64,000 nucleotides of DNA, taken from the NCBI RefSeq assembly GCF_048593235.1, contig NC_133620.1, positions 270,149,765 through 270,213,764 on the forward strand, read 5' to 3'. The DNA comes from Sminthopsis crassicaudata (Eukaryota). Positions 1 to 33,875 of this stretch are shown here, one piece after another. Both the position numbers and the translations under genes were made by a program. A model generated the notes under the pieces. That model was not told the origin of the DNA. It saw only the letters and a list, made by a program, of their open reading frames with translations, and did not search any database. How positions within the stretch are numbered: the stretch's first letter is position 1; the number at the start of each line of letters is the position of its first letter.

Positions 1-89
1 AAATGACTAAACAATAACCACAAATTGTATACAGAACATATACTGAAGTTATAGAACTGTTATATATAGTTATAGAACTTTCCTTTCTA

Positions 90-722
90 ATAAAAAACTA
101 TTAAGAAACATTTTCCCAAAAAGGTTGTGGTTATATATATACAGATGGAGGCAATCATTATTTAAATTTTCCATTCCCTGCAAAAGCACATTTTATCAAT
201 AATTAGAGATAACCTACAAATAAACAAAACAAATTTTATTTTAAAATTATGGTGATATGGAGTAGCATTAGAAAAGAGAGGTTTGAGTATATGTTGAATT
301 ATATGTTCTATTAAAGGGATAAAATATCCTAACCTATTTTTGGAGGTTATTTAATTGAGGGGAATGGAAAAATATATTCTTCTAGCTCTGACATAGAATG
401 AATCTTAATTCCCAAAGAGAAAAAATAAAAACAAGATTTACCCATGCTCCCTTTTGATTATTTCTACAACATTCAATAGGTCAAGAACCAGTAACCTAAG
501 GTCATCTATCAGGCTTTTCTTCCCTTCATCAATTTCTCCTTTTGATTTGACATTTGCTGTACTGATATTTTTTCTAGTAGAAACTGAAGCTGCTGAAGAG
601 TACACAGATGTCTGAAAAGGAAAAATACAAATTCAGCAAAACTTTATTACAGAATAAGTAGCTTAAAAATCATGTGGAAAGCAGTAAGCTAATTGTGGAA
701 AGGGGAAGTTGTCTAAAGAAAT
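90..722. repeat. Segmental duplication block A: paralog of CD2AP intron 16/exon 16/intron 15 (parent ~33520-34340)
   Basis: Collinear same-strand matches on both sides of the exon, e.g. gataacctacaaataa, aatcattatttaaatttt, gcttaaaaatcatgtggaaagcagtaagctaa, gttgtctaaagaaat. Confidence 0.93.
442..611 (-). CDS. Diverged paralogous copy of CD2AP exon 16 (exon 16'), open frame, intact splice sites; expression unknown
   Basis: ttgtatttttccttttcag|ACATCTGTG...GAGCATGG|gtaaat; 170 nt, phase 0/2; TSVYSSAASVSTRKNISTANVKSKGEIDEGKKSLIDDLRLLVLDLLNVVEIIKREH(G); by hand alignment 27/56 aa and ~74% nt identical to 34036-34211, with one 6-nt indel. Confidence 0.6.
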
Positions 723-1680
723 GATAGGAAACTTCTGGGGGTGGAATCAAGTACAGGAAGCCCTATAGCTAAACTTTCCCAACATTTACCTCCAAACAAC
801 TTTAAAATGAAGTCTTAAATTAAATTCTGGAGTAATAAAGCCAACAAAAGAATGGGGTAAGATGTTTTTCAGCCTGATACACATTATAAGGGCAAAAAGA
901 GAGATCTGTGATGCTAGTATATAAGCTAGTCCAGAACCCATAAGGCAGCAAGACTAGCTCTGGGTATCAGAAGCAGCAGTAGCCATCAGCAGCTTTGGCA
1001 GCTCCTGGTGAGAAAGAAAATACATGGGATATCTGTTCTAGTTCCAAATACAGGACCAGTGCTGTTTGAAAACTCCATTGTCTGTATCTATTTCTGTATC
1101 ATAGTTCTAGGCCATAAAAGAATGCTTTGGATCACAAGGGAGCAGGGATCTTGTGGAACTGCATCACTTGTGGTCACAAGGGAACAGGGATACTAATGAG
1201 TAGCATTGCTTGTGTTTTGAAAGGGATCAGGGGCCCTTCCTGGGTAAGGACCAGACCACAGACCTGGAGAGCAGTATTCACACCTCTCCACAGATCATAT
1301 CACTTTAAAAGCGCTGAAACCCCCCAGAACTAGCTCTGAGAACAACAGTGTGAGAATTCCTGAACTTGGGGTAATGCCCCTGTACTCTCACCCCAGGAAC
1401 AGAGTTCAATTTTAAAGTAAGGTTCAAAGTCAAGAAATAAGACTAAAAAATTTAACCAAGAAAGCAACAATAACAACAACAAAATAACCTGACCAATAGA
1501 AATTATTATAATAACATGGAAGATGATCAAGACACAAACTCAGAAGAAGAAATTATGTCAAAACAGTTACAAGTAACATCTCTGCTTCCTCTCCCAAAAA
1601 ACGTGAATTGTACACAAGCCCAATAAGAATCCCTGGAAGAGCTAAAATTATTTTGAAAATCAAATAAAATAAATACACAT
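723..1680 (+). mobile_element. Degenerate L1 5'UTR and ORF1 start
   Basis: Resembles the marsupial L1 5' region, with an ORF1 N-terminus-like segment (atggaagatgatcaagacacaaactcagaagaaga); many stops. Confidence 0.6.
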
Positions 1681-3400
1681 TATAAAACAAACTCAATAAA
1701 TCAATCAATATTTCTATATATCACCAACAAAGTCCTACAAGAACTAGTAAAAGATGCCCCATTTAAAATAACGTAAACTTTATAAAATATTTAGGAGTAT
1801 ACTTACCAAGACTCAGGAACTACTCATGACATGAACATAATTATAAAATATTTTTATACAAATAAAGATATATTTAAATAATTAAAGAAATATTAATTGT
1901 ACAAGAGCAGGCAGAGTCAACATACTAAAAATAATTTACCTAATCTATTTATTCAATGCCATCTCAATCAAACTACCAAAAATTATTTTACTAAGCTAGA
2001 AAAAATAATAATAAAATCCATTTCAAAAATCCAAAGGCTAATAAGATCAAAGGAATTTTTAAAAATGGAAAGGAAGGAGTATTAATAGTACCAGATCTTA
2101 TATTATAGAATACTATATACTATTATATAGAATTATACTATATTATAGAATCAGAAAATTATCAGATACTAGCTAAGAAAAGTGCATCAGTAGAATGGAG
2201 TAGACATACAATATACAGTATCAAATGATTATAGTATTTGACAAGTGTAAAGATTAGCTTTTGGGAACAAGTATACATTGTTTGGCAAAAAAAAAAAAAA
2301 TTGTTGGGAAAACTGGAAAGTCTGGCAGAAATTATATATAGACCAATATCTTACACTATTTTTCAAGAGAAGGTCAAAATAGATACAGAACACCCAAATA
2401 TAAAAGGAGATATTGTAAGAAAACTAGAAGAACATGGAACATCATCTATCAGACTTATGGAGAGGAGAAGAATTTATGAATAAACAAAAGATAGAAACCA
2501 TTGTGAGATGTAAAATGGATAATTTGATTACATTAAATTAAAAAGGAGGTGTACAAATAAAACCAATGTAGCCAAAATTAGAAGGAAAGAAGAAAATGGG
2601 AAAAATCTTATATGCAATTTCTTGGACAAAAATGTATAGAATTTTGTCAAATTTATATGAGTCATTCCCCAACTGATAAATGGTAAGTTTTTTATATATA
2701 AAGAAATCAAAACTATACATAGTCATATAAAAATGCCCTAAATCATTAGTGCTTAAAGAAATGCAAGCTAAAACAACTTGGAAATACCATCTCATTACTT
2801 ATTGGATTAGCAACAATGATAGAAAGGAGAAATAACAAATGTTATAGGAAATGTGAAATAAATGGGACATAAATACACTGTTTATGAATAACAACTGTGA
2901 ATGGATGTAACTATTTTGGAGTATAATTTGAAATTATGCCCAAAGAGTAATAAAACTGTATACCCTTTGATGCAGAAATACTAGTGTTAGATCAGGGGAA
3001 AAGGAAGAGAACTTATATGATCTAAAATATTTATAGCAGCTCTCTTTGTGATAGCTACGAAATAGAAATTGAAATGATGCCCATGAATTGGAGAATGACT
3101 AAACAAATTGTGCTTCACAATTGTGATGGAATGTTCCTATATTATGAGACATAATGAACTGGTTAATTTTAGAAAAAAATGGGAAATTTTGCATGAAATA
3201 ATAAAAAAGCTAAGTAAGCAGAACTAAGAAACATTATAACTAGTAACAGCAATATTGTTTGAATAATTATTACGAACAAGTTATTCTAGGTATTATAAAC
3301 ACTCCAATCAACAACAAAAGATCTATGAGAAGAAAGATACTATCCACCTCCACAGAAAGAACTGATAAACAGAAAGAAGTAGGCATAATATTGTTTTATA
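1681..3400 (+). mobile_element. Degenerate L1 ORF2 3' half and 3'UTR
   Basis: L1 ORF2 C-terminal motifs (aaatatttaggagtatacttaccaagac; ctatttattcaatgcc; ccctttgatgcagaaatacta); frameshifted. Confidence 0.85.
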
Positions 3401-3859
3401 CATATTTATTTATTTCCAGATATATTGTAAAGACTTTATTTCTTTAAATAGAAAAAGTTGCTGGCAAGAGAATCTGGTAAAGAAAATACCAGCAAAGCAT
3501 AAAGTAAAAATACTAAAGACTTTTGACAAAATTATATAAAGAAAAAAAATCTTAACTAAATGCTATATATTTCCACTGAAAGTCTATGAAAGTTCTGTAT
3601 CTGACATATATATATGTGACTAAATTCTAACATATTTATATATGCATATATATGTGTTTCTCTATATTTGTATGCAGAAATATATGCATGTATATACATG
3701 CATGTAATATATACAAGCATATACATATAGGTATGTATGTGTATATATATAAACATATACATATAGTTATAAATCTGTGTTAAAGGGTAACATTTTCTAG
3801 TATAAGGAGGAAGAGATAGAGGAATATAGTTCAAATCTTAAAATGTAACAAATAATAAA

Positions 3860-6800
3860 TTAAATTTAAAAAATCAAATAAGAAAAAATCTAGAAAAGAA
3901 ATGAGTGAGGCAAGAAAATTATGAAAACAATTAACAGCTTGGTAAAAGCAGCACAAAAAATACTGGGGAAGAGAGACTCCTTAAAAACATTAGTAGTCCA
4001 CACCTGTCAGATTGGCTAAGATGACAGGAACAAATAACGATGAATGTTGGAGGGGATGTGGGAAAACTGGGACACTGATACATTGTTGGTGGAGTTGTGA
4101 AAGAATCCAGCCATTCTGGAGAGCAATTTGGAACTATGCCCAAAAAGTTGTCAAACTGTGCATACCCTTTGACCCAGCATTTCTGTTATTGGGATTATAT
4201 CCCAAAGAAATACTAAAGAGTGGAAAGGGACCTGTATGTGCCAAAATGTTTGTGGCAGCTCTGTTGTAGCTAGAAACTGGAAGTTGAATGGATGTCCATC
4301 AATTGGAGAATGGTTGGGTAAATTGTGGTATATGAAGGTTATGGAATATTATTGCTCTGTAAGAAATGACCAGCAGGAGGAATACAGAGAGGCTTGGAGA
4401 GACTTACATCAACTGTTGCTAAGTGAAATCGGCAGAACCAGAAGATCACTATACACTTCAACAACAATACTGTATGAGGATGTATTCTGATGGAAGTGGA
4501 AATCTTCAACATAAAGAAGATCCAACTCACTTCCAGTTGATCAATGATGGACAGAAATAATTATACCCAGAGAAGGAACACTGGGAAGCGAATGTAAATT
4601 GTTAGCACTACTGTCTATCTACCCAGGTTACTTATACCTTCGGAAGCTAATAATTAATGTGCAACAAGAAAATGGTATTTATACACATATATTGTATCTA
4701 GGTTATATTGTAACACATGTAAAATGTATGGGATTACCTGCCATCGGAGGGAGGGAGTGGAGGGAGGGAGGGGATAATTTGGAAAAATGAATAAAAAAAA
4801 ACAACATTAGTAGTCAAATGGAAAAATAAAAATAAAAGATCATTGAGGAAAATCATTCCTTAAAAATTAGAATCAGGCAAATGACAGCTAGAGATTCCAT
4901 GAAATATCAAGAAACAATGCAACAAAGTCAAAAGAATACAAAAATAAAAGACAATGTGAAATATTTCATTGGGGGAAAAAACTGATCTGAAAAACCAGGT
5001 AGAGATAATTTAAGAATGATTTGACTACTTGCAATCCATGATCAGAGAATGAACCTAGACATCATTTTTCAAGAAACTACAGAGGAAAATTGCTCTGATA
5101 ACCTAGAACCAGAGGGCAAAATAGACATTTAAAGAAATATACTGCTCACCACCTGGAAACCATTCCAAAATGAAAACTCCCAGGAATATTATAACTGAAT
5201 TTCAGAGCTCCCAGGTCAATGAGAAAATACTTCAAGAAATCAGAGAGAACAAAAAAAAAAGTTAAATACCTAAATAAAGATCAGTTAAGATCACATAGAT
5301 TTAGCCACCACCACATTAAAGGAGCAGAAGTCTTGGAATATAATATTCTGGAAGGCCAAAAGAGCTAGGATTAGAATCAAGAATAATGTACCCAGAAAAA
5401 GTAAGTATAATTGGGGAAGGGGGAGGGAAAGGAATTGGATATTAAGTGAAATAGAAAAAGTTTTGAGCATTCCTAATAAAAAAAGCAAGGATTGAATAGA
5501 AAATATTATTTTCAAATACAAAACTTATAAGAAGCATAAAGAGGCAAATTTGAAAGAGAAACATAATAGACTCAATAAGGTTAAACTTTGATATAACTTC
5601 TAAGAAATTATTATTATTAGAACAATTAGAAGGACTATACATAGATAAAAGAAAGAGGAATGGGTTGATTATTTGGGGAAAATCTTAAAAAAAAAACCCT
5701 GGATGGGCTAGAAAAGGGGGAATATAAAGAGGAAGAATGGATGAAATTATCTCACATAAAAGAGGCACAAGAATGAAGGCTTTTACAGAGGAGGGGAAAA
5801 TATTGGAAGAAGAATGAGCAATGTCTAAACCTCACATCTGAACTGTTTCAAAGAGAGAAGAATATATATGTGTACATGTATACATGTATACTCATAATTG
5901 GGTACAGAAATTTCTCTTACTCAACAGGGCAGAAAGAGGGGAAGGGAAAAAGAAAAAAAGGTGATACGATAACAGGGAAAGGAGATTGAAAGTCAATGAT
6001 AAGGAGAAAAACTGATTTTTTAGTGGGATGAAAGAAAAAGAAATGGATGAACAACAGAAAATAGGATGGAGGGAAATGCAAAGTTAGCAATCATAACAGT
6101 GACTGTAAATGGGATGAATTCACCCATAAAGAAGCAGATAGCAGAATGGATTAAAAAAGAATCCAACACTATGTAATACACAAGAAATAAAATTGAAACA
6201 GAAGGATATAAATAGTGTTAAAATAAGGTACTAGAACAGAATTCAGTATGGTTTTGCTGAAGAAAAAAAGGCAGCAGTGGAAATCATGCTGTCAAAGCAA
6301 ATGCAAAAATAGACCTAATTAAAAGAGGTAAATAGGGACATTATATCTTGCTAAAAAGTACCACAGACAAGGAAGTGATATCACTACTAAATGTATACAC
6401 CAAACAGCATATCATCCAAATCCTTGAAGAAAAGTATAATGATTTAGAGGAGGTAATTAAAAGTAAATGCTATATTCATGTGGAGCCCTCAACTTCACCC
6501 TCTCAGAGCTAGATAAATTTAACCATAAAAATAAATAGGAAAAAATTTATGATGATAAATAGAATTTTAGAAAATTTAAATATAATTAAACCTCTGGAGA
6601 AACCTGAATGTGAATAGAATATGTTTTTCTCAGCTATACATAGTACTTTCTCAAATATACTATGGCATAAAAAGCTCACCAAAAATTCAGAAAATAGAAA
6701 TATTAAATGCATTAATGCACTGAATGCAATAATGCAAAATAAAATTATATTTAATCAAGGGCCGTGCAAGCATAAATTAAAATTAATTGGAAACTAATAT

Positions 6801-7720
6801 TATCCTAAAAAATTACTATGTCAAAGAAGAAATCATATAAACAATCAATAATTTCATTAAAGAGAATAACAGAGATGAAGTAATATACCAAAATTTGAGG
6901 TATGTGGCAAAAGCAGTACTTGAGAGAAATTTATACTCTAAATGTAAATATATCAACAAAAAGCAAATAGCAGATCAATTAAACAGGCATTCAACTATAA
7001 GAAAACTTTAAAAAGAACAAATTAAAAATTTGCAATTAAACACCAAAATGGAAATAATGAAAATCAAAGGAAGTTAATAAAATTGAAAGTTTAAAAAATT
7101 TAATTAATAAAATTAGGAGCTAGCTTTATGAAAAAAAGTGGATAAACCATTGGTTATTTTGATTACAAATAGAACCAGACTTCCAGAAACCAAAATTAAA
7201 AGGACAAATGTACCACCAAATAAAGAAAAAATTAAAGCAGTTATTAGGAACTATTTTTCCCAATTATATGCCAGTAAAACTGACAATCTAAATGAAAAAT
7301 ATGGATATTTGAAAAGCAGAAATTGCATAGATTAACAGAAGGAGGAATAACATATTTAAATAATCCTATTAAAAAAAATGAAAATGAAAACCATAAATGA
7401 GCTCCGTAAGAAAAAGTCAACAGGAGTAGATAAGATTCACAAGTGGATTCTATCAAATGTGCAAGAAATAATACCTCACAATACTATATAAAGTATTTGA
7501 AATAAAGTTGAAAAAGTCCTATTAAATTCCTTTTATGACTAAATATGGTTTGGATTCTTAAATTTGGGAGAGAGCAAAAACAAAAAGAAAGCTACAGGTA
7601 AATTTCTCCTAATTAATATTCATGCAAAAAATTTATGATTATAGCATTATATCACAAAAGTCACACACTGTTACCCAAAGGGATTTGTACCAAGCGTGTG
7701 GGCTGATTTAATATAAGGAA
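3860..7720 (+). mobile_element. Old L1: ORF1, inter-ORF region, ORF2 endonuclease to RT start (interrupted by a younger L1 at 3999-4802)
   Basis: ORF1-like coiled-coil/RRM segments; endonuclease start at ~6090 (gtaaatgggatgaattcacccataaa); heavily disrupted. Confidence 0.88.
3999..4802 (+). mobile_element. Young 5'-truncated L1 with 13-bp TSD
   Basis: ORF2 C-terminus ([22 protein letters not shown]), 3'UTR and A-tail; TSD aacattagtagtc at 3986-3998 and 4803-4815. Confidence 0.95.
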
Positions 7721-7812
7721 AAAAACTATAATCAAACTAACTATATTTCAAAGCATTAATCATCAAAACAACCTAATGATGGTGGAGCAGTGGAATAGAT
7801 TAGATATACAAA

Positions 7813-8048
7813 GTTGTTGTTTGTCCTTTGTTCTCAAAGAGGACAGTGACTTCAGGGAAGTGATGGCTTGAAAGTGAATTGGATTTAAGTGAGGGAGGAT
7901 TATGCAAGGTCACTTGCCTCACTTTCCTCTCTAGAACCATCAGCATCCAATGGCCAGATATAAATCAGGAGACTGGAGATTGCATTAGATGCAATATGCA
8001 ACCTTGGTTTTTTATAAGCTAAGATATTTAACAGGTCTCAGTTTGACT
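7813..8048 (-). mobile_element. RTE-dependent marsupial SINE (WALLSI-like)
   Basis: Begins gttgttgtttgtcctttgttctcaaagagg, i.e. a (CAA)n tail on minus; family assignment from recall. Confidence 0.6.
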
Positions 8049-8869
8049 AGAATTTAAAAAATTATTTATTGTCTATTATATGCCAAGTAACATAGAAGGT
8101 ACTGAGGTTACAATGACAAAAGTAAAATTTTAGTCCTTGAACTCAAAAAGATGATAATCAATCATAGGGAAAAATAAGAGAACATATTCACAAATGTGAA
8201 ATAACTAAAAAGTAAATGAAACACATTGAAGAGGTAAAAAGATAACAATATCTGAAATGATCAGTAAAAAACTTCATGTTACTAATAAGACTAATAAGTG
8301 CAACTTGAGCTGAGCTTTAATGGCAGTTACAGAAACATCAAGTCTGGCCACACAAAAAAATACAACACACTAAATAGAGTGAAGGTAATAATACATTTTA
8401 TATTACTTTTGTCTTTACTGTATTATGTCTTTACTGTATTAACAATTAAAGCTACATAAATTATTTTCTGGTGTTTTACAACATAGGATTTACTGTAAAA
8501 CAAAGCAATCAAGAATGGTACAACATATGATTTACTGGGAAACAAAGCAATCAAGAATGGCAGGTTTTTCCTAAATCATACTATCATAAACAATTATCAA
8601 AACTTTATGAAGTAGAAAAAATTTTGGGAAGATAGCAAAGTCAGAAAACTTTCAACTCTCCAAATTTCCTCTCAAAAAAAAAAAAAAGACAGAACATGTT
8701 GTTAATGCAGTAGAAATAAATATGGGTAAATACATTAATTGTCTCTAAAGATAATTTTAAAAGGTCATCAGGAAAGATGACCTCCAGAGGCAGAGGTTTT
8801 GCCTGAGAGAAATGCAAACATCTCCAGGCCAACTCTGAAGAATCAAGAAACAAGCCTTGGGAACAGCTG

Positions 8870-10260
8870 GGTTGAGAAGGGTTTACAATATACAGTAATA
8901 AATGACATTAATCTAGCATTTGATAAACCCAAACATCAAAATTTGGAGGGCAAAAAATTCACTAGGTTGTCAAAAATTTTTGGACAACTATAAATCACTT
9001 TGGCAGAAACTAAACAAAGACTAATATCTCACCCCATTTGCCAAGTGAATAAATGATTTAGACATAAAAGGTGATTACATAAATAAAATAGGGAAGCATG
9101 GAAAATTTTGTCTCCCAGATTTATAGATAAAAGTTTATGACCAAACAAAAAATAGAAAGGATCATGAGAGGTAAAATAAATGACTTTGATTATATGCAAT
9201 TTAAACATTTTTGCACAAATAAGCCATGCAGCCAAAATTAGAGAGCAGAAAACTGAGGGAAAAATTTTTACAGCAGATTTCTCTGATAAAGGCTTTTTAA
9301 AAAAATTAAATATATAAGAAACCAAGCCAAATTTATAAAAACAAAGCATTCATCAATTTAGGGGTGGATAAAGGGCATGAACAGGCATTTTATGTAGGGG
9401 GGAAAAAGCTATCATAGTCACAAGAAAAAATGCTCTAAATCATCAATTAGAGAAATGCAAATTAAAACATCTCATTCATAGCATCTCACACTTATCAGAT
9501 CAGCCAAAATGACAGAAAAGGAAAGTGACAAGGAATATGGAAAAATAGCTACACTAAAACATTGTTGGTAGAGTTGTGATCCAGTCCAACCATTCTAGAG
9601 AAGAATTTTAAAACACACCTAAAGGGCTAAAAAAGCAAACAAGCAAACAAACTTCACTCTCTTTAACCCAGTCATATCTCTCTTAGGTGTCCCAAAAAGA
9701 TTAAAGAAAAAGGAAAAGGATGTATATGTACAAAAAATATTTATAGTAGGTCTTATTATGATAAAGAATTTGAAATTGAGGTGATCCTCATGAATTTGTG
9801 AATGGCTGAAGAAATTGTGGTATATGACTGTGATGGAACATAATTGTACTATAGAAATGATAAGCAGAATGATCTCAAAAGACTTAATAATACTTGTACA
9901 TCAGCAAAATAACTGTTTGGACATGTATACATATATTGTATTTAATTTATATTTTAACATATGTAACATGTATTGGTCAACCTGCCATCTGGAGGGGAGG
10001 GTGAGGGGAAGGAGGGGAAAAGTTGGAACAAAAGGCTTGGCAATTGTCAATGCTGTAAAATTGCCCATGCCTATATCTTGTAAATAAAAAGCTATAGTAA
10101 AAAAAAAAAAATTTAAGAATACTTGTACATAGTAACAGCACTATTGTGAGGATGAAAGAATTACTCTGATTAAGAAAATGATCTAAGATAATTCTAAAGA
10201 ACTCACAATGAAAAATACTATTCAGCTCCAGGGAAAGAACTGATGAATTCTTAATATAGA
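8870..10260 (+). mobile_element. Degenerate L1 ORF2 3' part and 3'UTR
   Basis: ctagcatttgataaacccaaa, cattgttggtagagttgtga and other L1 C-terminal motifs; many stops. Confidence 0.85.
9902..10117 (+). mobile_element. Young L1 3'-tail insertion with 13-bp TSD
   Basis: G-rich 3'UTR plus A-tail; TSD aatacttgtacat at 9889-9901 and 10118-10130. Confidence 0.92.
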
Positions 10261-10296
10261 TTGAAGCTTACTTTTTTTTTTTTCTTTCTTTCTTTT

Positions 10297-10330
<34 letters not shown>

Positions 10331-10719
10331 CTGTGTGTGTTTTCTTTAGCAACATGACTAATATGGAAATGTTTTTCATGACTTCACAGCTATAACTGAT
10401 GTGATATTGCTTGCCTTCTCAATGGATAGGGGAGATGGCTAGCTGGAGATAAGATTTTTTAAATTTTAAATTTCAATTGAAATATTAAAATTTTAATATC
10501 AATATTAAAATATTTATAATAAATTGGCATCAAAATAGTAAATATTAAAAATTAATGAATTAAATTTTTAAAGGAAAATCAATTAGAAGTTCAATGTCAA
10601 ATACATGTTGTCTTATCTAAAATAACTACTCAATAAACATAAAAAACACATGATTAACATCAAAAGGGAAACATTGTATATAATTAAAATATTTAAAGAT
10701 ATTAAAAATATAAGTATTT

Positions 10720-10957
10720 TTGCTGTTAAATCATTTTGGTCCTACCCAACCTCCATCTGAGCACATTTGAGGGAATTTTGGCAAAGATTGTGGAGTGATT
10801 TGCCAAATTATTTCCTTCTCTGACTCAGAAAACTGAAGCAAACAGATTTTGGTGATCTGTCCAAGGTCACATAGCTAGGTGTCTGATGCAGAATTTGAAT
10901 CCAGATCTTCTTGACTCTTAGTGCAGCACTCTATCCACTGCCCTATCTAACTGCCCC
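10720..10957 (-). mobile_element. Mar1/MIR-type CORE-SINE
   Basis: ttggcaaagat...gtttgccaaattatttccttctc...ggtcacatagctag...ccactgccctatctaactgcccc. Confidence 0.8.
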
Positions 10958-11119
10958 AACAATGCAAAATAGTTCAGAAAAGCTCCTGTGATCAGTGGCT
11001 ACATTAAAAGCAGCACAGTGCCCAAATTGAAAATCTTACTATAAGACTACTTCATCAGAGCGCATGTGGAATATTGTGAAGTTCTGTGCACCCAAATTTT
11101 AGGGGTCTTGGCTCTCGGT

Positions 11120-11723
11120 TAATTTTACCTTGGCTTTTTCTATTATAAGGGAAGGCTAAATAAATGGTGGTAGAGTTAGGTCTGGAAATGACTCTGGTAT
11201 AAACTCAAAAGGCATTTATAAATAATATAGAGGAAAAGAAAAATATTTCTGAAAATCTGGATAATTAATAAATTTTCTAGGATAAATTTCCTTAAAGATG
11301 TGTGTGGGATAAAATCATTTTAAATGTTATAATTCAGTATTTTAGTATTCTGAGTTATTACAATGAAAATATATTTCCAAAAATGAATAATATATATTCT
11401 GGTTAATAATAAGAACAAGCATGAATACAGTGTTTTAATGTTTGCAAAGCACTTTACAAATATCTCATTTTATCTTTACTATAATCCTGGGAATCAGGTG
11501 CTATTATCAGAGCCATTTTATAGTAAAGGAACCTGAGGCTAAGTAACTTGTCTAAAGTCACAGAGCCTAATAAGTGTCTGAGGTCATATTTGAATTTATA
11601 TCTTTCTTGCACTATATCCACTATATCACTTAATTGTCTCTTAGATTTACTAAAACATACAATAAATACAGTGGGTTTGAAAAAGAAAATAAAAGATCAT
11701 TAAAGGGATTAAAAAGCCAATTA

Positions 11724-11785
<62 letters not shown>

Positions 11786-12350
11786 TGAGTTTTGGGGGTT
11801 TTTTTGAGGAGAGAAAAAAATTATAGCATTTAAAATTATTCTACAAAAAACTTTTTAGCAATATAATTTGTGAAAATAGGATGTATTTATCAAAAATGAT
11901 CTTCAGCAGCAAAGCTTAAAGGGCATTCTTTATGTGCACTATAATTTAGTTCCTTTCTTGCTTTTTTCTTTGCAAATAATTCCCTTCTTTAATCTATTTA
12001 GATAGTTAAGTGGCTCAGTAGAATTGAATTTGGAAATACCTAAGATTCAAATATAGGTTTTGGAACTTACTAGCTGAATAATCCTGGGAACCTCTATTTT
12101 CCTCAGTTTTCTTCATTTGTAAAATAGAGATGTCAGTAAGCACTATATCAATACCGGCTATTATCACTTCCTTATAAAAATGTATTTTACAATTTCCTTG
12201 TGTTCTACATATTTGAACTTGTAAACCATGATTTAAAAAGAGTACTCATAAAATCAATGGCTGATATCTTAGTTTACTTTTAAAAGTCCATATATGCATT
12301 AAAATCAATCAAGTGAAACATGTATTAAGCACCTACTATATATGCTAGAC
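11120..12350. repeat. Segmental duplication block B: paralog of CD2AP intron 15 (parent ~35830-37400)
   Basis: Collinear matches in unique sequence and shared old MIR/L2 copies: ctttttctattataag, ctggataattaataaattttctaggataaa, gttattacaatgaaaat, tgggtttgaa, aaagggcattcttta, gttctacatatttgaacttgtaaacc, aaatcaatcaa. Confidence 0.9.
11728..11781. repeat. (TA)27 microsatellite
   Basis: Perfect TA run. Confidence 0.97.
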
Positions 12351-12573
12351 CAGTGGTCCTCAAACTTTTTAAATAGGAGGCCTGTTCACTGTCCCTCAGA
12401 CTGTTGGAGGGCTGGACACTGTCTCTGCCGCCTCAGCCCAGTGCTGGAAGTGTGCATTGCTAACACGAGTTTAGGTCGAAAGTCACTTCGGGTCTGATTT
12501 TGCCATAGGCGGGCCACATAAAAGTCCTCAATGGGCCACATCTGGCCCATGGGCCGTAATTTGAGGACCCCTG
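12351..12573. mobile_element. hAT MITE resembling OposCharlie1 (OC1), 223 bp
   Basis: TIRs cagtggtcctcaaact / rc caggggtcctcaaatt (14/16); left flank tgctagac fits the Charlie-type target, right flank taagac is only a partial TSD; retains several CpGs. Confidence 0.85.
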
Positions 12574-15989: not shown

Positions 15990-17300
15990 TACTTGCCTAA
16001 TAGTTACAAAAAAGTAAAACAAGTCTCTGTCCTCAAGAAGCTTGCATTTTAGGCAAGAGAGGGTATAACATGTACAAATGTAATATTCAAGGTAATTTTG
16101 GTAGGGAGGATATTAGAAGCTGAGGACTGGAATCAGAAAAGACTTTGTGTAAGTACTGCTTGAGCTGACTTTTGAAGGAAGCCAGGGATTTCAAGAAGGA
16201 ATATGAGGAGAGCATTGCAGGCATGAGGGAGATAGCCAATGTAAAGGCACAAAGATGAAAGAGGATCACTACCAATATGGCTTAGCCCATAAGGGGAGAA
16301 ATATGTAAGAAGATTGGAAAGAAAGGAATAGGCTATAAAAAGTGTTCAATGCTCATTTAAAATTACTTTTTTATTTTTTAAAAAATAATGATAATCATGG
16401 AGCTGACTGCATAAGGGAGAGTGTGATGTTTAAATTTACACTTAAGAAAAATTACTTTGGCAACTGGGTGAATGATGAAGTAGAAACTTTTGGTAGGGAA
16501 ACCAAATGGTACATTATTCTCATAGTCCCAGTAGAGGTGATGAGGATATAAATGAAGGTGGTAGCTAAGAATAGAGAAAGGGGTAGAAAGAGTAAGTGGT
16601 GTACAAGTGTGGATTTGGCAAATGCCTGGATATAAAAGATGAGGAATTTAAGGTGACTAGAAGAGACTGGAAGAATGGTGGTACTCTTGCTGTATTCAGG
16701 AAAGTGCAGAAGGGAGTAGGTTTCAGAAGGGGGAAAGAAAAATTATTTCGGAAATGATGAGTGCAAGGCTTTTGCCAAGAGGCTTACTTGCATGTAAAAG
16801 ACTGTTGGCATTTTTGGACAGAGTAGCCTTAGAGAGGTAAGGTTAGAAGTTAGACTGCAGAGGCTTAGAAAGTATTGAAAGTATGGAAGTATTCTGTAGA
16901 AAACTTTTTCACAGAAGCTGGCTGAAAAAGGGAAGAGATGCAACTAATAGGGATGGTAGGATATATAAAGTTTTTGTTTGTTAAAAATAGGAGATACTTA
17001 GGCATATTTGTAAGGCAGGAGGGAAGAAAGAATCCAATCTTTAGTGTTAAATTGAAGATTAGAGAGAATAAGAGATGAGATGATAGTGGAAGGCAATTGG
17101 CTGGAGATGACAGGTGAGGGTGAGATTAAGCATACATGTAGAGAGACTGGCCAAAAAAAAAAAAAAAATAAGACTGAACTACAGGGGGAAATTGGAGGAG
17201 GGTAGTGTTCAAGGGATTTTGAGATAAGACAGAAAAGAACAGGAAGCTAAGATATCTAGATATTCTAAACTAGAATCAGAGGTGAGATATAAACTTCAAA
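15990..17300 (-). mobile_element. L2 fragment
   Basis: Purine-rich plus strand typical of reverse L2 (ctgtcctcaagaagcttgcatttt; gagctgacttttgaaggaagcc). Confidence 0.75.
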
Positions 17301-17959
17301 ATCTAGCACCTTCTACATCATTTTGTCCCTCTAAACGAGAATACTGGATTAGATTTAGTTCTCTTTTGACTGTGAATTCGAAGATGTTCTAAAATTAAAC
17401 TAGAGATATAATGCAATTTGCTCAAAGTCACCCCACTAGTTAGTAGCAGAATAGGGATGAGGATCTAGGTCTCTGGATTCCCACCAGTTGCCTAATGTAT
17501 AGAAATTACTCAATTCTTTCCAAGTCAAGGTTATATTATCTTTTAGTCATATTTTTGCATTTCTTAATCTTGAAACAAATTATTTTTAGTCACATGAAAA
17601 TGTAATTTTATTTCCTTCATTCATCTCATATATGTACCAAAAAAGTGTATTTTTAAAAATAAGTGCAATTCTAGGAGAAGTTAGGCTAGAGTCAAGGAGA
17701 ATTAGTGGAGAAATGTGGGTTACATAGTATCAGACCAAAGGCTTAACATTTTTAACTTTAGTGTTTTCCTAACTGCAGTATTGTGACTATGTCCAGTCTT
17801 AGGTGGAGTAGGTAACTAGTTATTATGTGGTAAAATTTCAGGCACTGTAAAATGACATGTATCACTCAAATTGGTTCACAAAACTTGTCATTATCTGAAA
17901 TTCTACAATTAGAATTGGTTATATCCTTTATCTTGTCATTACCCATATTGTATTACCTC

Positions 17960-18790
17960 CATGTTCAATGTTTCAAATACCCTTATCTAAAATACCCTTA
18001 TCGCCTGGCCATAATCTACCAGCTTTACATCTTTTCCTCTGTCCTCTCTCACCACAGCCTATTCTTTGCCCACACCAAGACTTCCGATTCCCTGATCCTC
18101 TCAGCTGTCTCCTAGACTATCTCCACTGCACTAGCAATATTCTTCTCTTTCCATCTTGACCCCCTTGTAAACCAATTCAATTCTGCATTGTCTTCTTCTC
18201 TTGATACCTTTAGCCCCCTTATTTCACTGATTGTACCCTGTCAAACTTTAGTCTCATCAATTCCATTGTCTGCCACCTCCACTCTTACACATGTGCTGCT
18301 GAGGAAAATTACAGTTGTGCTGCATTACAAATTATGTTATACAATCTCAACTAAGCCCTCACTGCTGCTAGACAATCCTACTGTATTTGTATGCCTCCTT
18401 TATCAATTTATTCTTCCCTACTCCATGACAACTCTCTTCAGAGTTTCTCTCAGAGAGAAACTTTTTTCATTTCTTCTCAAACTGTCTACCACTCTGACCC
18501 TGTTCCCTCCCCCTTCCCACAGAGTTAAGAATCTCATCTCATATTTTACAGAGGAAAAAAAAAATTAAGGCCATTTATCATGAGCTCCCTCTTTTTCTCA
18601 CTTCATCTCAAATTACTCAGATGATTTCTGCCACCTCCTCCTTCACTCATTTTACATGACGAGATGGCCTTACTACTTATTCAAGTTAATCCCTTGACTT
18701 GCCTAAACTATTCTACTTTATCCCATTTCCTCCAACAGACTGCCATCTCCGTCATCCCCATTCTCATTTATTTTCAGTTTCTCCCTGTCT
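17960..18790 (+). mobile_element. L2 ORF2 fragment
   Basis: Pyrimidine-rich L2 endonuclease-RT linker-like sequence; decayed. Confidence 0.7.
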
Positions 18791-18829
18791 ACTGACATTC
18801 CCTAGTATCCACAAATATGTTCATATCAA

Positions 18830-19450
18830 ATCAATCAAATAAACATTTATTAAGTACCTACTATGTCTCAGAAAGTGTAACAAATGCTGGGGATACTGAA
18901 AGAAACAAAAGATAGTTCCTGCCCTCAAGAAGCAAACAATTTGACAAATATATACAAATTATGCTGACTAAATAGGAAATAATTAATAAAGGGAAGGCAC
19001 GGGAATTGAAATGTTAGAAAAAGATTTCCTGTAAAAGTGGGATTTTAGCTGTTTTTTAAAGAAAACCTAGACAGTCTTCCAAGCATGGAGTTTCTGTCAT
19101 GGAAAGCTGTGTTCTAAACAGCCAGAAAGAGTATGTATTGGGGAGTTTTAGGGTAGGAGAATGAAAAGGTGGTGGCTAAATTACAAAGGATTCTGAATAC
19201 CAAATAGGTTTTTGTATTTGGTCCTGGAGGTAATAGAGCTACTGGAAGTATGTGTTTGTTGTGTGTGTTTAAGGGAGAGGAGGCATATGTTTTAGGAAAA
19301 TTACTGGTGGCTTAATGATGAATTGATGTGGGTAGCAATGAGGTAAGAAAGACCCAGCAGCAAGCCTTTGCAATTATCCAGGTATGAAAAGCTAAAGACC
19401 TGCCCTAATGTGGTGGCACTGTTATTTGTATTTTTTATATTTGAGAGATG
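18830..19450 (-). mobile_element. L2 3' fragment
   Basis: L2 3' end rc: caaataaacatttattaagtacctactatgt...gctggggatac...cctgccctcaagaagc. Confidence 0.8.
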
Positions 19451-21260
19451 TTGCAAAATGTCTTCCACATCCTATAAAGAACAGCAATTGATTCTGTTAT
19501 CCCCACTATCATCCTGTATTTCTTCTGTACTTTGCGGCTAATCTCAAAATACCCTGTCTACAATAAATGCCTCCCCTTTCTCTACAACTCTCTCTCTTCT
19601 CCTGAACCCCTTACAATCTGATTTCTGACCTTATTCATTGAAATTGCTCTCTCCCATTATCAATGATCTAATTACCAAATCCAAAGAACTATTTTTAATC
19701 CTTATTCTCCTAGACTTCTCTGTAGTCTTAAAACACTGTTATGATCACCCTCTCCTTGTTAACTCTCTTTTCTCTAGGTTTTCCAGATACCACTCATCAG
19801 AGTAGGGTTCCTCCAACCTATCAAACCACCTCTTCTCAGCCTTTTTTCCTGTATTGTCATCCACATCAAGCCTTCTAATCATAGGTGTCCCATAGGGTTC
19901 TGTCCTGGGCTCTCTTCTCCCTCCATATTTCTTTGATGATAATGTCCAAGGATTTAAATACCATTTCTCTGCCAATGATTCTCAAATCTGCCTAGCCTGT
20001 CCCAATTTCTCTGCTGACCCTAGTATTGCTTTTCAGATATTCTGAACCAGATATCCAGTAAGCATCTTAAACTCAACATATATGAAACCAAACTCATCAT
20101 TTTCCCTTAAGTCCTCCTCTCCATCTCAACTCCACTATTATTCCTAATTACTCGTCCTTGACTCTTCACTATCTCTCACCTCTCCCAAATCCAATCTGTT
20201 GCCAAGATCTTATCTATTGCACCTCTGCAACATCTCTCCTATAGGCTCCTCTCTCTCCATTGCTACTGCCACTCCCCTAAGGCAGGGCCTTCATTACCTC
20301 ATGCCTGAACTACTATATTACCCTGGCTGGTGGTTCCACCTGCCTCAAAGTCTCTCCCCATACCAATCTATCCTCTATCTATCACCACAATGAGTTTTCT
20401 AAAACACAGGTCTGACAATATTATCTCCTTACCTCAATAAACTCCAGGAACTATCACCCCACCAAGATAAAAAACTAAGTCCTCTATTTAACCCTTTATA
20501 ACTTAACCTAACCCCTCCTCCAACTTTTCTGGGATCCTTACACCATACTTCCTACAGTGGTGACCATGTTAGCACCCTGAGTACCTTAGAATCAATCAGA
20601 GTCAGGATAAGCAAGTCTTTATTCTTGGTCTTTAGCAGTAGAAGTGAAGAGTGTGAATGTGTAGGATCTCTGTGACCTTACCTCCTTGTCCTCTCACAGA
20701 AGTGACCCTGGCTAGTCTCACTGCACCTCCTAGTCCTTCCCACAATTCTCTGTATACACCAAAACGACTGGGCCAGCACAGGATAGTGGGAAGGGCCATT
20801 TTCCAAGCATATTCTTATAGAGTATAGTCCAATCAGTAATTAACCCCAAGTGCTCTATTGTCCAACCTCTTGAGTGCATTGACTCAAGAGTTTCAACCCT
20901 TTACACCCTACTACCTATTCTTTCACCCATTAACACTGGTTTCCTTGGCTATTTCAAGAACAAGACACTCTATGGTCTGGGAGTTTTTTTTTTGGCTGTC
21001 CTCCATGTCTGGAATGCTGCTCTTCATCTCTATATAGACTGACTTTATATACCAATAAAAATCCTATCTTCTAGTGCTTTCATTGTCAAATTTTTTTCTA
21101 TTTGCCCAATATAAAACTTGTTTGTATATCTAAACTATATGCTTATCGTCTCTATTAGGTTATGAACTTCTTGAGGAAAGATACTGCCTTTTTTGCATTC
21201 CCAGAGCTTAGTACAGTATTTTAGCATAAATTAAGTCCTTTATGTTTACAGATGCTTATT
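19450..21260 (+). mobile_element. L2 RT region to 3' end, interrupted by the LTR at 20556-20905
   Basis: ggtgtcccatagggttctgtcctggg (GVPQGSVLGP-like) and ccatttctctgccaatgattctcaaat (YADD-like) motifs. Confidence 0.82.
20556..20905 (-). mobile_element. Solo ERV LTR, 350 bp, same orientation as CD2AP
   Basis: Minus strand starts TGTAAAGGGTTG; other end is (a)gtggtgacc with a mutated terminal base; TSD tcctac/ccctac (5/6); minus-strand TATAAG at 20814-20819 and AATAAA at 20618-20623. Confidence 0.85.
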
Positions 21261-23400
21261 TTGACTCTTTAGCACCTCTGAATCCTCTCAGGATTATCTT
21301 GGGGTTTATGGGATAGATTTCTCTCTTAAGCACCAGGCCTTAAACCAAAACCAATCTGATTCTAATTGGTTAAAACCATAGATCCTAAACTAAGCCCCAT
21401 TTCGCCATTGTTTTGGTCTTGACAGATTCAGATTGAATGTAAATAGTAGCCATTTCAGCTTTGAGGAGAAACCCTGAGTCTTCCCCTCCCAGATTCCATT
21501 ATTCTTCTACTTAGATTTTTTTTTTTTAACTAGATGAGATTCTTTGCCTCAATAGCAATGTAAGATTATAATTGTAGTCCTGCTGTAAAACTATTAAAAA
21601 AAATAGTAGTTCTGTAAATAATTTGATTTAGTTATAAAAACTTGGGAGAAAAAGAGGTAGTTTTTTTGCCTGTGTACTTATCTTTATTTCTTATATGAAG
21701 ATATTTATATTTTATTATTTCTCTAGTAGACTATATTTGTAAACTAACCCATTTGACAATCCCACAATATTGATAACTAGCATTTATGTAATACCTACTA
21801 TTGATTTCTGGTTTCTAGGTCTGTTAACTTCAGTTATCCTTAACTATTCCACACATTTGATCAAGTTTTATTGATCCTATTCCCACAATATCTTACATCT
21901 CTCCATTCACAGAGGCACTACTGTAATTCAGATCTTAACTTCTAAACTGCACTTCTGCAGTAACTTCTTACTGGTCTTTAACTTCTTTCCCTCGAATCCA
22001 ACTTCTACACAGATACTAACATAACTTAAAAGTGCAGGTTTGACCATATCTCTTCAGTCTGATAAATCCCAGTGACTCCCAATTACTCTTAGATCAAACT
22101 TCTATTTAGCATCTAAAATCTTCATAACCTTAACTTACCTTTCTCCAAGCTTATTATACTACACTGCACCTTCATCCAATTTTTGGTTCAACCAAAATAG
22201 ATCTTTCTGTTCTTCACCTGTCATCCTATTCTTACTTTGCCAAGCTATATCTCCATACCTGCAATACATTCAATTCTTCACTTCTGTCTCTCAGAAACCC
22301 TGGTTCCTATTAAAGTTCAACCCAAGCATCACCTTTGACATGAAACCTTTTCTGATCTTTCCACTGGTTGTGCCTCTTCTGGCAAAAACAAACAAAACAA
22401 AACAAAAACCTCAATCTTGTAATTTTATATATAACTTATGTGAATGTTTTCCCCAGAAAAATAATGTAAACTTGAACAAAGGGACTGTTCCTTTTTGTGT
22501 TCCTTGCACCTAGTAATAAATTAATATTTAGCTTGATTTTTGTCAGACAAAACAGATTTTACTGAACTTGTTTCAAAGCAGCTTTTCATGGAGGAAACTA
22601 AGGATCACAAAGTTACTGGATGCCTCAGAGCTTTAGAAGATTACACTAAATGAGGAGAGAAAGGGAAAGGAGGAAGGCCAGCCTAAGAAACTTCACTTAA
22701 TCTATAATTTTGACCAAGCTATTGTGCACATCCAAAAATAATAGCAGCTAACATTTATATAGTACTTACTAAGTGCCAGGGACCGTGCTAAGCACTTTAC
22801 TATTATATCTCATTTGATCTTCACGACAACCCTGGGAAGTTGGTGCTATTATTATTTTACAGATAAGGAAATTGAGTCAGAAGCACAGTGACTTTGCCTG
22901 GCCTTATACAAATAGAAGTGTCTGAAGCTCAATGTGAATTTACAACTCTAGGCCTAGAGCTCTTATCCACTATATCAAGGCTTCTTAAAAATTTGTCTAC
23001 TCACAACTACTATTCAAACCCATTAAATTTTTACATGACCCTGGGTATATAGTATATATAATAGGTATACAAATTAAACCTCTATTGATAAATCAATCTC
23101 ACATTCAGTCATGTGAACCATTGTCTAAGAAGCTGGGCTCTACACCATTTATCTACCTAGGTGAATGTATTCAATGAATTGTTAAATAGTGGGCAGATAT
23201 TGTACAAGTGAACTGGCCAGTAGACTAAAAATTTCCTTTAGCAAACTGTGTAGCCCTTCCTTTAGAAGAAAACCTGGTGGACAGTGACTAAAAATGAATC
23301 TTTTATTTCCTTTCTTGATTAACCAAATCCCAACATTGTGACTTAAAGCTTTTAAAGGCATGGAATACTGTTTTGCTAAAGTTCATGGTTACAAAACTTA

Positions 23401-23848
23401 TGCCTCAGTCTCCCTGGTAGCAACCCCCCCTTTCTTGCCACTGGGACAGATTAATTAGGTCTGGGATTCCTGACCACTAGTATTCCAAGGAATTATAAAA
23501 TGCAGATGGTTTATCTCAAGATAGGTGGGTGTATTTTCTCTCTCAGAAATCTTGGCTCTTAGCCTCCCAACTTATCAGAATTTATGATTATTCCTTACCC
23601 CCGACCTTTCAGAACTAAATTTATGGTTCATTCCTGGAAGTTCCCACTCACCAGTGCTCTATCCCCACACCTTTCCTTTGTGTCCCTTATTGCTGAAGCT
23701 CTATATAAGAATCCCTGGAATCCTTTGCTTCCTGCTGGACTTTGAGACAATACCTTCAGACAATAGTCCAATCCAGCCAACTAGTCATGCTCTCCAAAAT
23801 AAAATATTAAAAACTCTCTAATCTTGCCTCAGTTTCTCTGGCATTACA
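23401..23848 (+). mobile_element. Solo ERV LTR (5' boundary uncertain)
   Basis: TATATAA at 23702-23708, AATAAA at 23798-23803, ends ...tttctctggcattaca; no clean 4-6 bp TSD found. Confidence 0.7.
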
Positions 23849-24969
23849 AAGACTTAACATTTTTAGTTAATAATGGGACATCATTTGGTGAATAATCATC
23901 ATGAAAAAGATATTTATTAAAGAAATCTTTATCAATACCTTTTCTTGATTTGGCTGCCAAGTCCATTCAAAGTCCTAGCCTGAAGCTTGCCTCCCCCAAG
24001 ACCATTTAAAGCTCTGTTTCCTTAGGAACTATCTCATGCCCAGCTGGTTTGATACTATGGTAATTCTGTCCACCTGTCTTGTTTCCAGGTCACAGAGCTC
24101 ACCCATAAACTGACATTTTCTATCTCCTTTGTTGGTGAGCTCTACACTGTATAGCACCTTCAATAATCCTAACTTACTTTGTTCTAGGATGCCTAAGCCC
24201 ATTTCTCAAGACTAACATTATTCTGGTTGAAGTTTTTGTGTGTGGATCAAGGAATATAATATTAAAAGAGTCAAAATTCCAAGTGACTGAAAAAGTAGAT
24301 TTGGGGAAGTGGGGGTGGAGGGTGTAGTACAATTGTGGCAATACTATTCAGGAAATACTAAGAAATCTGTAAAAAAGTCTGATCCCTTTAAGAAGGATTT
24401 AAAAGCCATGGACAGTCAAGTTGAATGACTACAATCTCTTACAGAGTATCCACACTGAGATCATGGACCAATCGAAGTGGTATGCCTATAGTTATAGATT
24501 ATAATACTTAAATCCAAAATTAGGTATAAAGTTATGGGGGACATTTTATCTTCTAATTCAGTTTCCATGAGCCTAGACACTGTTTAAGGTCATTTCACTG
24601 CATTATCAAATACTTCCATTTTTAAACTTAGAACTTCCAAATATTATCTATCAAAGCTTTAAATTATGGTGAGATCCAACTATTTCCTGAAACACAAGCA
24701 AATACAATTGTGTTAATAGAAAATATCTCAAACAACAAAAAACACGCATATAGTAGCAGTATTTTCTTTTTATTTGAATTTTTTTTCCAGGGAAAACATG
24801 CATTTTACAGTATCTGTAAACACAAGAATATGTTTACACTGACTTTGAATTCAGTACATTTTGGAATGTTGGAATACTCATCAAACCCAAAGTAATATGC
24901 AACAGCAGCAAAAGAGAGAGGAATGCATTAGATTAGGACATTTTATGGTTAAAAATACTCATAGCAGCA

Positions 24970-27781: not shown

Positions 27782-27823
27782 TCAAGAAGACAGGGCTACT
27801 TTTTTCAGCTTTTCTATTTCCAC
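27782..27823 (-). CDS. CD2AP: CD2AP terminal exon 18 equivalent, coding part (42 nt incl. TGA)
   Basis: cctttttag|GTGGAAATA...TCTTCTTGA; VEIEKLKKVALSS*, matching the CD2AP C-terminus. Exons 9-18 total 993 nt = 331 codons with no internal stop. Confidence 0.96.
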   Translation of the reverse strand: MEIEKLKKVALSS

Positions 27824-28930: not shown

Positions 28931-29160
28931 AAAGATTTTAAACTAAATCAGTTTTTACTTATTAATATCCATTCAGTTAAATAAACCTATCTATTTTACT
29001 ATGATATGAGTAAAACAACAGAAATTTTAGCTAAAGCATAGTGTCTGTTTCTTAAACAGCTAAAAGCATATATATAGTCTCTATAAATAATAAACAGAAA
29101 ATTATATGACTAACATAAAATAATACACAAATATATAGCAGGTACAACCAAAGGACTATG
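28931..29160 (+). repeat. ~230-bp direct repeat, copy 1 (copy 2 at 30588-30817)
   Basis: aaagattttaaactaaatcag...acaaccaaaggactatg occurs twice, 1.66 kb apart. Confidence 0.95.
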
Positions 29161-30587: not shown

Positions 30588-30817
30588 AAAGATTTTAAAC
30601 TAAATCAGTTGTTATTTATTAATATCCATTCAATTAAATAGAACTACCAATATATTTTACTATGACATAAGTGATACAGAAAAGAAATTTTAGACAAATC
30701 GTAGTGTGTTTCTTAAGCAGCTAAAAGCATATAGTCTCTATAAATGATAAACAGAAAATTATATGACTAACATAAAATAATACACAAATGTATAGCAGTT
30801 ACAACCAAAGGACTATG
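30588..30817 (+). repeat. ~230-bp direct repeat, copy 2
   Basis: Matches 28931-29160 with scattered substitutions and small indels. Confidence 0.95.
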
Positions 30818-31727: not shown

Positions 31728-31791
31728 CTCTAGGTTACTTCTAATTGTCTTTTCCTCTTCCAATTCTTTTCTTAGTTTTTCCAGTTCCTTC
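31728..31791 (-). CDS. CD2AP: CD2AP exon 17 equivalent (64 nt)
   Basis: tttttag|GAAGGAACTG...CTAGAG|gtaata; (G)KELEKLRKELEEEKTIRSNLE; phase 2/0. Confidence 0.96.
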
Positions 31792-32945: not shown

Positions 32946-33689
32946 AGGACAGATTTCATTAAGAACCAAAAAATGTGAGAAATCCAAAACTAAAAACCAG
33001 AAGTTCCTAAACTTTTAAAGATTATCATATATTCATATACTTATTTTTGTCATTTTTCATTATTAGATAAAATTTTGAAATTTTGTAATAATAATACTTT
33101 TGCTACGTCAGTTAAGAAATATTTCTTACAATTATTCAACAATTATGCACTTATTGTTTGCACACCATGGTTAACTCTGTTTACAAATTAATGCTGCATA
33201 CTTTATATTACAAATGACATGTGGTTGTTTCAACGTGCTATTTTTCAACTACACAGTCCTTATTCCTTCCAGAGTGGGATACATAAAAACTGTCAGGAAA
33301 AATCAATGTTACATTTTAAGGTAGTTTCTACAATGTATACTAGAAAAGAATGCTTTCAATAATATCTTATGAAAAGTACTAAAAAACAAAATCTACATTT
33401 TTTGTAAAGTATAGGGATGGTATTATTTGAACTCCAAGGGAAAATAAAAGTTCTAAATATATAATTAACATTTATCAAATGTTATAGATAATACAATCTA
33501 AACTTTTAAATATACCTGTTTATTAAAAAAAATTATTAAGAATTATTGTCCCAAAAGGATTATAGCAATCTGCAGAAGTAGGTAATCATTGTTTAAATTT
33601 TCTACTCCCTGGAATGTAATCACAGATTCTTTGATATGGATAACCTACAAATAACCAACATAATTTCTGTTTTAAAATTCTGTGGTGAA

Positions 33690-33875
33690 TGAGAAATGTG
33701 GTAATATGTTTAGAAGGGTTGTATATATTTAACCTATATTCATTGGATGCTATCTTGGGAAGGGAAAAGTGGGGAGAGAAAAAAAATTGGAATACAAAAT
33801 CTTATATAGAAACAAATGTTAAAAATTATTTTCACATATATTTGGAAAAATAAAATGCTATTTAAAAATAAAATT
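33690..33875 (+). mobile_element. L1 3'-tail fragment in parent intron 16 (absent from the duplicate)
   Basis: tttaacctatattcattggatgctatcttgggaagggaaaagtggggag...aaaaataaaatgctattt. Confidence 0.75.

Follow-up and report, generated by a model that had tools for sequence, protein, structure and literature searches.

A probable tandem duplication of the CD2AP tail retained as a second coding module in marsupials

Introduction

The stretch of DNA considered here, referred to as the window, spans 64,000 nucleotides of the marsupial Sminthopsis crassicaudata (NCBI RefSeq assembly GCF_048593235.1, contig NC_133620.1, positions 270,149,765 to 270,213,764 of the forward strand). It carries the gene CD2AP on its minus strand and, beyond the usual end of that gene, a second copy of the sequence around CD2AP exon 16. 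CD2AP is a protein of the kidney filter (podocytes) and the product of an Alzheimer-risk gene, and its tail is generally held to mediate self-association. An earlier examination of these letters, hereafter the original prediction, had read the second copy as an old duplication of the 3' end of the gene. This reading is supported but was incomplete, as the copy is a conserved and already annotated coding module that is spliced after exon 17. We consider it very probable that the CD2AP tail was duplicated in tandem on the marsupial stem and that the copy was retained as a second, distal coding module.

The CD2AP locus

The window is AT-rich (32% GC) and contains a single gap of N (44337-44464). 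Two exons with matches to CD2AP structures identify the gene. The exon of the CPI (capping-protein binding) motif (40580-40693, minus strand) is identical at 28 of 29 residues to the CD2AP peptide of PDB entry 3lk4_C (E 6e-14), and an SH3 exon at about 63.3 kb has the CD2AP structure 2jte as its top match. The identity is also borne by an exon-by-exon correspondence to marsupial CD2AP models, those of S. crassicaudata itself among them.

All coding exons mapped here lie on the minus strand. A proline-rich exon (51123-51296) and the exon next to it (50530-50670) precede the CPI exon, which is followed by exon 15 (39566-39649), the last one upstream of the duplicated unit. Exon 16 (34036-34211, 176 nt) matches residues 520-579 of the S. 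crassicaudata model X3 (P0130), and exon 17 (31728-31791, 64 nt), bounded by an AG acceptor and a GTAATA donor, continues in frame with it. The coding part of the proximal exon 18 (27782-27823), the last exon of single-module isoforms, closes with a TGA at 27782-27784. Its peptide agrees at 13 of 13 residues with the end of the single-module model X10 (XP_074166821.1, P0137), which terminates in VEIEKLKKVALSS, encoded at 27785-27823. Candidate poly(A) signals for this last exon occur at about 24.8-25.0 kb. With this exon map and the stop codon at 27782-27784, the copy at 84-12350 sits downstream of the proximal stop codon.

A second copy of the region around exon 16

Comparison of the window with itself by blastn recovered six collinear blocks on the same strand, pairing 84-722 and 11134-12235 with 33519-34340 and 35845-37182 at 54-162 bits. 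All six pairs are plus/plus: 84-251 with 33519-33682 (72.5%, E 2e-18), 427-722 with 34021-34340 (70.9%, E 1e-40), 11134-11222 with 35845-35930 (75%), 11242-11726 with 36111-36634 (65%, E 4e-34), 11857-12131 with 36725-37006 (69.5%, E 2e-26) and 12184-12235 with 37123-37182 (80%). A repeat-derived end piece, 12290-12339 with 37379-37493, is linked only indirectly, both sides matching an element at 18815-18940. The best real scores were 162, 140, 114 and 89 bits, against at most 37 bits in 40 block shuffles and 72 bits for the reversed sequence. The two collinear same-strand blocks of the original prediction are thereby confirmed, with scores far above the shuffles.

On the copy's side, block 1 (84-722, minus strand) holds exon 16' together with the beginning of intron 16' on one flank and ~110 nt from the end of the copy's intron 15 on the other; its identity to the parent is 76% in the upstream intron, 73.5% in the exon and 65-68% downstream. 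Block 2 of the copy (11134-12350, minus strand) is a homolog of parent intron 15. The parental counterparts, also on the minus strand, are a block surrounding exon 16 (33519-34340) and a block in intron 15 (35845-37493), the latter with unique homology up to 37182 and the repeat-derived end piece at 37379-37493. The two blocks are 10.4 kb apart in the copy and 1.5 kb apart in the parent. Homology on the parent stops at 37182-37493, that is 2.1-2.4 kb from exon 15, where a distance of about 2.1 kb had been proposed. At its other end the copy runs off the left edge of the window ~440 nt into its intron 16.

These alignments show directly a DNA-level duplication in direct orientation that starts within intron 15, as had been suggested. 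When all parent exon peptides were compared with the window by tblastn, a paralog was found for exon 16 only (E 1.6e-13), and none elsewhere in the window for the SH3-C, proline-rich, CPI and exon-15 exons. This agrees with the original prediction, which had seen no paralog of exons 9-15 between 12.6 and 24.6 kb, and is consistent with a copy devoid of a promoter or upstream exons of its own. A processed retrocopy is ruled out by the retention of intron 15 and intron 16 sequence and of both splice sites. A misassembly was rejected since the two copies differ by ~25-30%, and the CD2AP paralog CIN85 was also rejected as the identity of the copy.

Within block 2, some segments resemble MIR and have matches elsewhere in the window, as would be expected if the collinear matches had arisen by chance or if a single long transposable element had inserted independently at both sites. 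Such matches are nonetheless limited to 11425-11539 (MIR-like) and a (TA)n run at 11719-11793. The blocks are otherwise single-copy within the window, which holds no further copies, and the chain includes a coding exon with its splice sites as well as unique intron sequence; other species have orthologous exons in their CD2AP models. The original prediction had named a confinement of the matches to generic repeats as the finding that would speak against it, and the blocks are not so confined. Chance or transposon collinearity is refuted by the exon/intron alignment, tblastn, the single-copy check and the shuffle controls, and we give it practically no credence.

Shared and private insertions

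Two MIR-like elements, assigned by eye from the MIR core, are common to both copies at equal relative positions in the block 2 alignment. Other insertions are private to one side. Present in the parent only, and facing a gap in the copy, are a short interspersed element (SINE; 35939-36106), which matches other SINE copies in the window, and an L1-tail piece (33681-33872), which matches 44100-44285. The copy in turn has a stack of insertions (723-11133), mostly L1 on the plus strand, with no counterpart in the parent. Within it, 4012-4266 (plus strand) matches residues 1123-1201 of human L1 ORF2p in the PDB (E 2e-25), and internal matches of L1 type lead to 43.5-44.1 kb, 47.8-48.3 kb and 54.9-55.2 kb; a Pfam search with seven open reading frames (ORFs) of the stack gave no match. 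Also restricted to the copy are the (TA)n run and, at its upstream boundary, an insertion resembling a miniature inverted-repeat transposable element (12351-12573, 223 bp), whose 14-nt inverted ends are 93% complementary.

For the MIR-like, SINE, L1 and MITE pieces, the alignment gaps agree with the partition that the original prediction had described. Older repeats shared by both copies and younger ones private to each imply a duplication at the DNA level followed by independent insertions, and the relative dating drawn from them holds; it can now be sharpened to a time before the split between opossum and Australian marsupials. The Kimura two-parameter distance (K2P) between the non-coding DNA of copy and parent is 0.27-0.29 (0.27 over 1157 aligned sites), the value of 0.27 lying on the low side, since the best-preserved stretches are the ones that local alignments pick out.

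As a separate observation on these repeats, 4523-4796 and 54891-55164 are inverted repeats of 94% identity and, of all repeat pairs in the window, the youngest. The pair adjoins an L1-like segment at 3999-4796, and has one member in the copy-only stack and the other in a CD2AP intron.

Exon 16' in marsupial CD2AP models

Exon 16' (442-611, minus strand, 170 nt) differs in length from exon 16 by one 6-nt in-frame gap. Its frame is open, and it is entered in phase 0 and left in phase 2, as is exon 16. The acceptor consists of a polypyrimidine tract and CAG, while the donor reads GTAAAT, against GTAAGT in the parent. The end of exon 17 and the beginning of exon 16' are both in phase 0; with compatible phases, the copy can be spliced in frame. 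In both exons (34033-34038 and 439-444, minus strand) the last two exon bases read into a TAA from the donor GTAA, and retention of the intron after either one would end the protein at once.

A search of the whole protein library by HMMER with the 56-residue exon 16' peptide returned a single protein with two matched stretches, XP_074046096.1 (P0001, E 5e-26), the RefSeq CD2-associated protein of the bilby Macrotis lagotis. Its C-terminus is composed of exon 16, exon 17, an ortholog of exon 16', a second exon-17-like segment and an exon-18-like end. A region search with the last 90 residues of this protein recovered 12 marsupial proteins at 176-239 bits, followed by a gap down to a group at 111 bits or less made up of single-module marsupial and eutherian proteins. 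Among the best 120 matches, all 12 two-module proteins are marsupial and 104 of the remainder are single-module, these being eutherian in every case where the source gives a name.

Cluster look-ups included, 58 marsupial CD2AP models were retrieved. The doubled order 16, 17, 16', 17', 18' was found in 31 of them, the other 27 being single. Doubled models come from nine species (Macrotis, Petaurus, Notamacropus, Vombatus, Monodelphis, Gracilinanus, Sarcophilus, Antechinus and Sminthopsis) and, with exons 16', 17' and 18' open throughout, from two independent pipelines (RefSeq and Ensembl/UniProt). The doubled module is already in public annotation, for S. crassicaudata as for the eight other species. 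For S. crassicaudata, the peptide of 442-611 occurs without a difference in the models X3, X4, X6 and X9 (XP_074166812.1, XP_074166813.1, XP_074166816.1 and XP_074166819.1).

The same models reveal the remainder of the copy. Doubled isoforms of S. crassicaudata end in VAIEKLKKLVLTS. For the final 34 residues of these isoforms, the only matches in the window are to the proximal exons, at 86% (exon 17) and 69% (exon 18). As this distal tail differs from the proximal exons, exons 17' and 18' exist and lie to the left of the window. The exon-18 peptides of the proximal and the distal tail are likewise distinct in dasyurids, wombat and wallaby, from which it follows that the duplicated unit took in exon 18. 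Second copies have been found for all exons of the unit, 16' in the window and 17' and 18' in the models of nine species. The proposal that the unit ran through exons 16-18 stands with respect to the S. crassicaudata models, which carry all three; the window itself shows only exon 16'.

Exon usage in the models was also compared. All 31 models with exon 16' retain exon 16, and a mutually exclusive use of the two exons was rejected as an explanation. The wombat model X2 joins exon 16 to exon 17', swapping in 17' and 18'. In three others, Sminthopsis X12 (P0124), Antechinus X3 (P0129) and a Sarcophilus model (P0133), exon 17 is joined to 17' and exon 16' is skipped; this join shifts the frame and gives a common out-of-frame tail of 38 residues.

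An AlphaFold2 prediction for S. crassicaudata X3 consists of three SH3 domains, long disordered stretches and two C-terminal helices. The helices, at residues 556-606 and 629-690, have block means of the predicted local distance difference test of 66-85, and the linker of 22 residues between them (606-627) is of low confidence. A PDB search for a solved relative of the coiled coil returned SH3 and CPI entries only.

Conservation and age of the copy

In the coiled-coil half of exon 16', 25-31 of 33 residues are identical between marsupial orders, and 26-31 of 33 in the corresponding region of exon 16. Between opossum and dunnart the count is 27 of 33 for either exon, while the two paralogs within one species share 17-23 of 33. 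In the serine-rich linker half, about half of the residues differ in both paralogs. A tree was built from exon 16 and 17 peptides, with those of the window joined as one row that is identical to a public dasyurid row. The 16'+17' rows of all species, opossum included, form a single clade (98/98) on a stem of 0.31, and eutherians are 0.56 away. Within its clade, the summed branch length of the copy is ~1.4 times that of the original module.

The duplication predates the split between opossum and Australian marsupials. Judged at the protein level, where exon 16' is as conserved as exon 16 and the clade structure follows the species, exon 16' appears to have been held by purifying selection since before the radiation of crown marsupials. 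Most likely, the duplication took place on the stem of the marsupials, once they had separated from eutherians but before the living ones diverged. Its placement after that separation is suggested by the shorter distance between paralogs, the surviving intron homology and the presence of one module in the 104 remaining proteins.

Several observations weigh against a retained coding module on the marsupial stem. The paralogs in the window show no mutual constraint, with an exon K2P of 0.30 against 0.27 in the flanks and a Ka/Ks (ratio of nonsynonymous to synonymous divergence) of ~1.2 between exons 16 and 16' by the Nei-Gojobori method. Two raw RNA runs, sampled at ~6%, contained 0 reads on positions 1-1500, and the sole contig from an RNA library (321-609, 289 nt, from a metatranscriptomic run) crosses the donor of exon 16' unspliced. 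The public RefSeq XP and Ensembl/UniProt proteins are automatic models, and for Dromiciops and Trichosurus the models retrieved are single-module only. Finally, the tree has no outgroup beyond therians, so that the timing relative to eutherians is drawn from branch lengths and surviving intron homology.

Some of these observations would suit a promoterless relic, in which exon 16' stays open by chance and the doubled isoforms are products of prediction and not real mRNAs. The paralog divergence and the RNA results favour it, as do a neutral simulation in which the frame of exon 16' stays open in 9-26% of trials, and a word search with a 64-residue exon 16' stretch, limited to proteins of 35-112 residues, which found no match. 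It is at odds with a coiled-coil half as conserved between orders as that of exon 16, with exons 16', 17' and 18' being open in models of nine species by two pipelines, and with within-clade branches of the copy just ~1.4 times those of the original. The Ka/Ks of ~1.2 misled toward neutrality because most of the change came early, on the stem of the copy, and rapid early change after the duplication explains it; the paralog divergence fits such a burst but does not by itself support a retained module. We consider a relic improbable.

Two remarks concern the RNA and model data. A constant word share of 0.29 was considered as an exon-sized signal and rejected, as it came from the 289-nt unspliced contig. 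This contig (run X8) has two exonic differences, at 545 and 566, that yield the residues of Antechinus and Sarcophilus (I to V and S to T), and the RNA run is probably from another dasyurid, not from the species of the window. For Dromiciops gliroides and Trichosurus vulpecula (P0131, P0132, P0013, P0152, P0154, P0157), the module may have been lost or may just be missing from the annotation.

A functional and conserved module might also have originated otherwise than by simple tandem duplication, through a dispersed or insertional event, or through a duplication older than the marsupial-eutherian split followed by loss in eutherians. The far end of the copy and its junction partner lie outside the window, both duplication boundaries sit in repeat-derived sequence, and the therian-only tree leaves room for an older event. 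Against these origins, the copy has the same orientation as the parent gene, lies directly downstream of it, and starts where a 25-kb unit would end. An older event also fits poorly with intron homology that persists at a K2P of ~0.27-0.3, with a paralog stem of 0.31, less than the 0.56 between marsupials and eutherians, and with the one module of all 104 remaining proteins. Such origins seem to us as unlikely as a relic. A tandem duplication on the marsupial stem is preferred, and a strict head-to-tail arrangement of the two units would follow from it.

A model for the doubled tail

In the scenario we propose, a unit that began within intron 15, took in exons 16, 17 and 18 and extended ~12 kb beyond them was copied in direct orientation. 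This unit would now measure ~25 kb, and its duplication was most likely tandem. The copy would have escaped decay, its exons 16', 17' and 18' becoming a second, distal tail module of CD2AP. When exon 17 is spliced to the proximal exon 18, the transcript would end there with the usual single coiled-coil tail. When exon 18 is skipped, the phase 0 donor of exon 17 would be joined to the phase 0 acceptor of exon 16', and splicing would proceed through 17' and 18', the predicted product carrying two linker-plus-helix units in tandem. The choice of isoform may be a competition between the proximal last exon and a splice reaching 31 kb further to exon 16'. Any effect of these isoforms on oligomerisation, like their real abundance, is inferred.

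The closest parallel is provided by the marsupial CD2AP gene models, which have the same module order and, in S. crassicaudata, an identical exon 16' peptide (examples are XP_074166812.1, Monodelphis domestica XP_007484103.1 / F7DAP7, Sarcophilus harrisii XP_031820601.1 and Vombatus ursinus A0A4X2JZI6). As automatic annotation, they are silent on the origin, age and selection of the module. Intragenic tandem duplications of exon blocks are similar in that DNA is duplicated directly with its introns and both copies are kept in one mRNA. The CD2AP unit differs in that the terminal exon, stop codon included, and flanking DNA downstream were part of it as well. To include the copy, a transcript consequently has to skip a complete last exon and poly(A) region at the proximal site, ~27 kb upstream of exon 16'. 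Mutually exclusive tandem exons share with CD2AP the neighbouring paralogous exons of equal phase, but exon 16 is kept together with 16' and only wombat X2 makes a swap, of 17' and 18'. SH3KBP1 (CIN85), the vertebrate paralog of CD2AP, has the same three SH3 domains, proline-rich region and C-terminal coiled coil; it is a far older whole-gene paralog at another locus, whereas the tail copy shares CD2AP intron sequence and covers the last three exons only.

No published description of the CD2AP doubling was found in the literature searched. In the Antechinus genome paper, on a species proposed as a model, CD2AP figures as a gene associated with Alzheimer's, and it was not annotated by the pipeline used there (PMC9631953).

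Marsupial CD2AP carries a lineage-specific second linker-plus-helix unit, apparently kept under selection across the orders sampled, and an exon that looked like an orphan, 27 kb beyond a stop codon, proved to be part of the gene. Comparisons between marsupial and human CD2AP should allow for the different C-termini of the major predicted isoforms. Somewhat short of probable, in our judgement, is the wider claim that the doubled tail is a marsupial-specific functional innovation, ~80 million years old and undescribed in papers, with a regulated choice between proximal and distal ends that alters oligomerisation or pairing with CIN85. If true, a regulated doubled tail would matter for dunnart, antechinus and opossum as disease models. 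The finding is otherwise a modest evolutionary note and not a new kind of system. In terms of approach, the search of full-length proteins with an exon peptide was decisive, which RNA sampling and the paralog Ka/Ks were not.

Other features of the window

The interval that separates the copy from the proximal 3' end of CD2AP (16000-24000) has a strong switch in GC skew, which is +0.32 at 16-18 kb and -0.25 to -0.30 at 18-24 kb; the single ORF tested there had no protein-family match. In the intron between exons 17 and 18, direct repeats of 230 nt (28931-29160 and 30588-30817) are 87% identical and 1.66 kb apart, and resemble the two long terminal repeats of a small element, or a local duplication. 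Just to the right of the N gap, within 44337-45850, a direct repeat of 272 nt (44547-44818 and 45582-45850) with 97% identity could be a young intronic tandem duplication of ~1 kb or an assembly artefact. Further upstream in the gene, 56397-56462 (minus strand) is a cassette exon of 22 residues, present in some marsupial CD2AP models, such as Sminthopsis X6, and skipped in others, such as X3.

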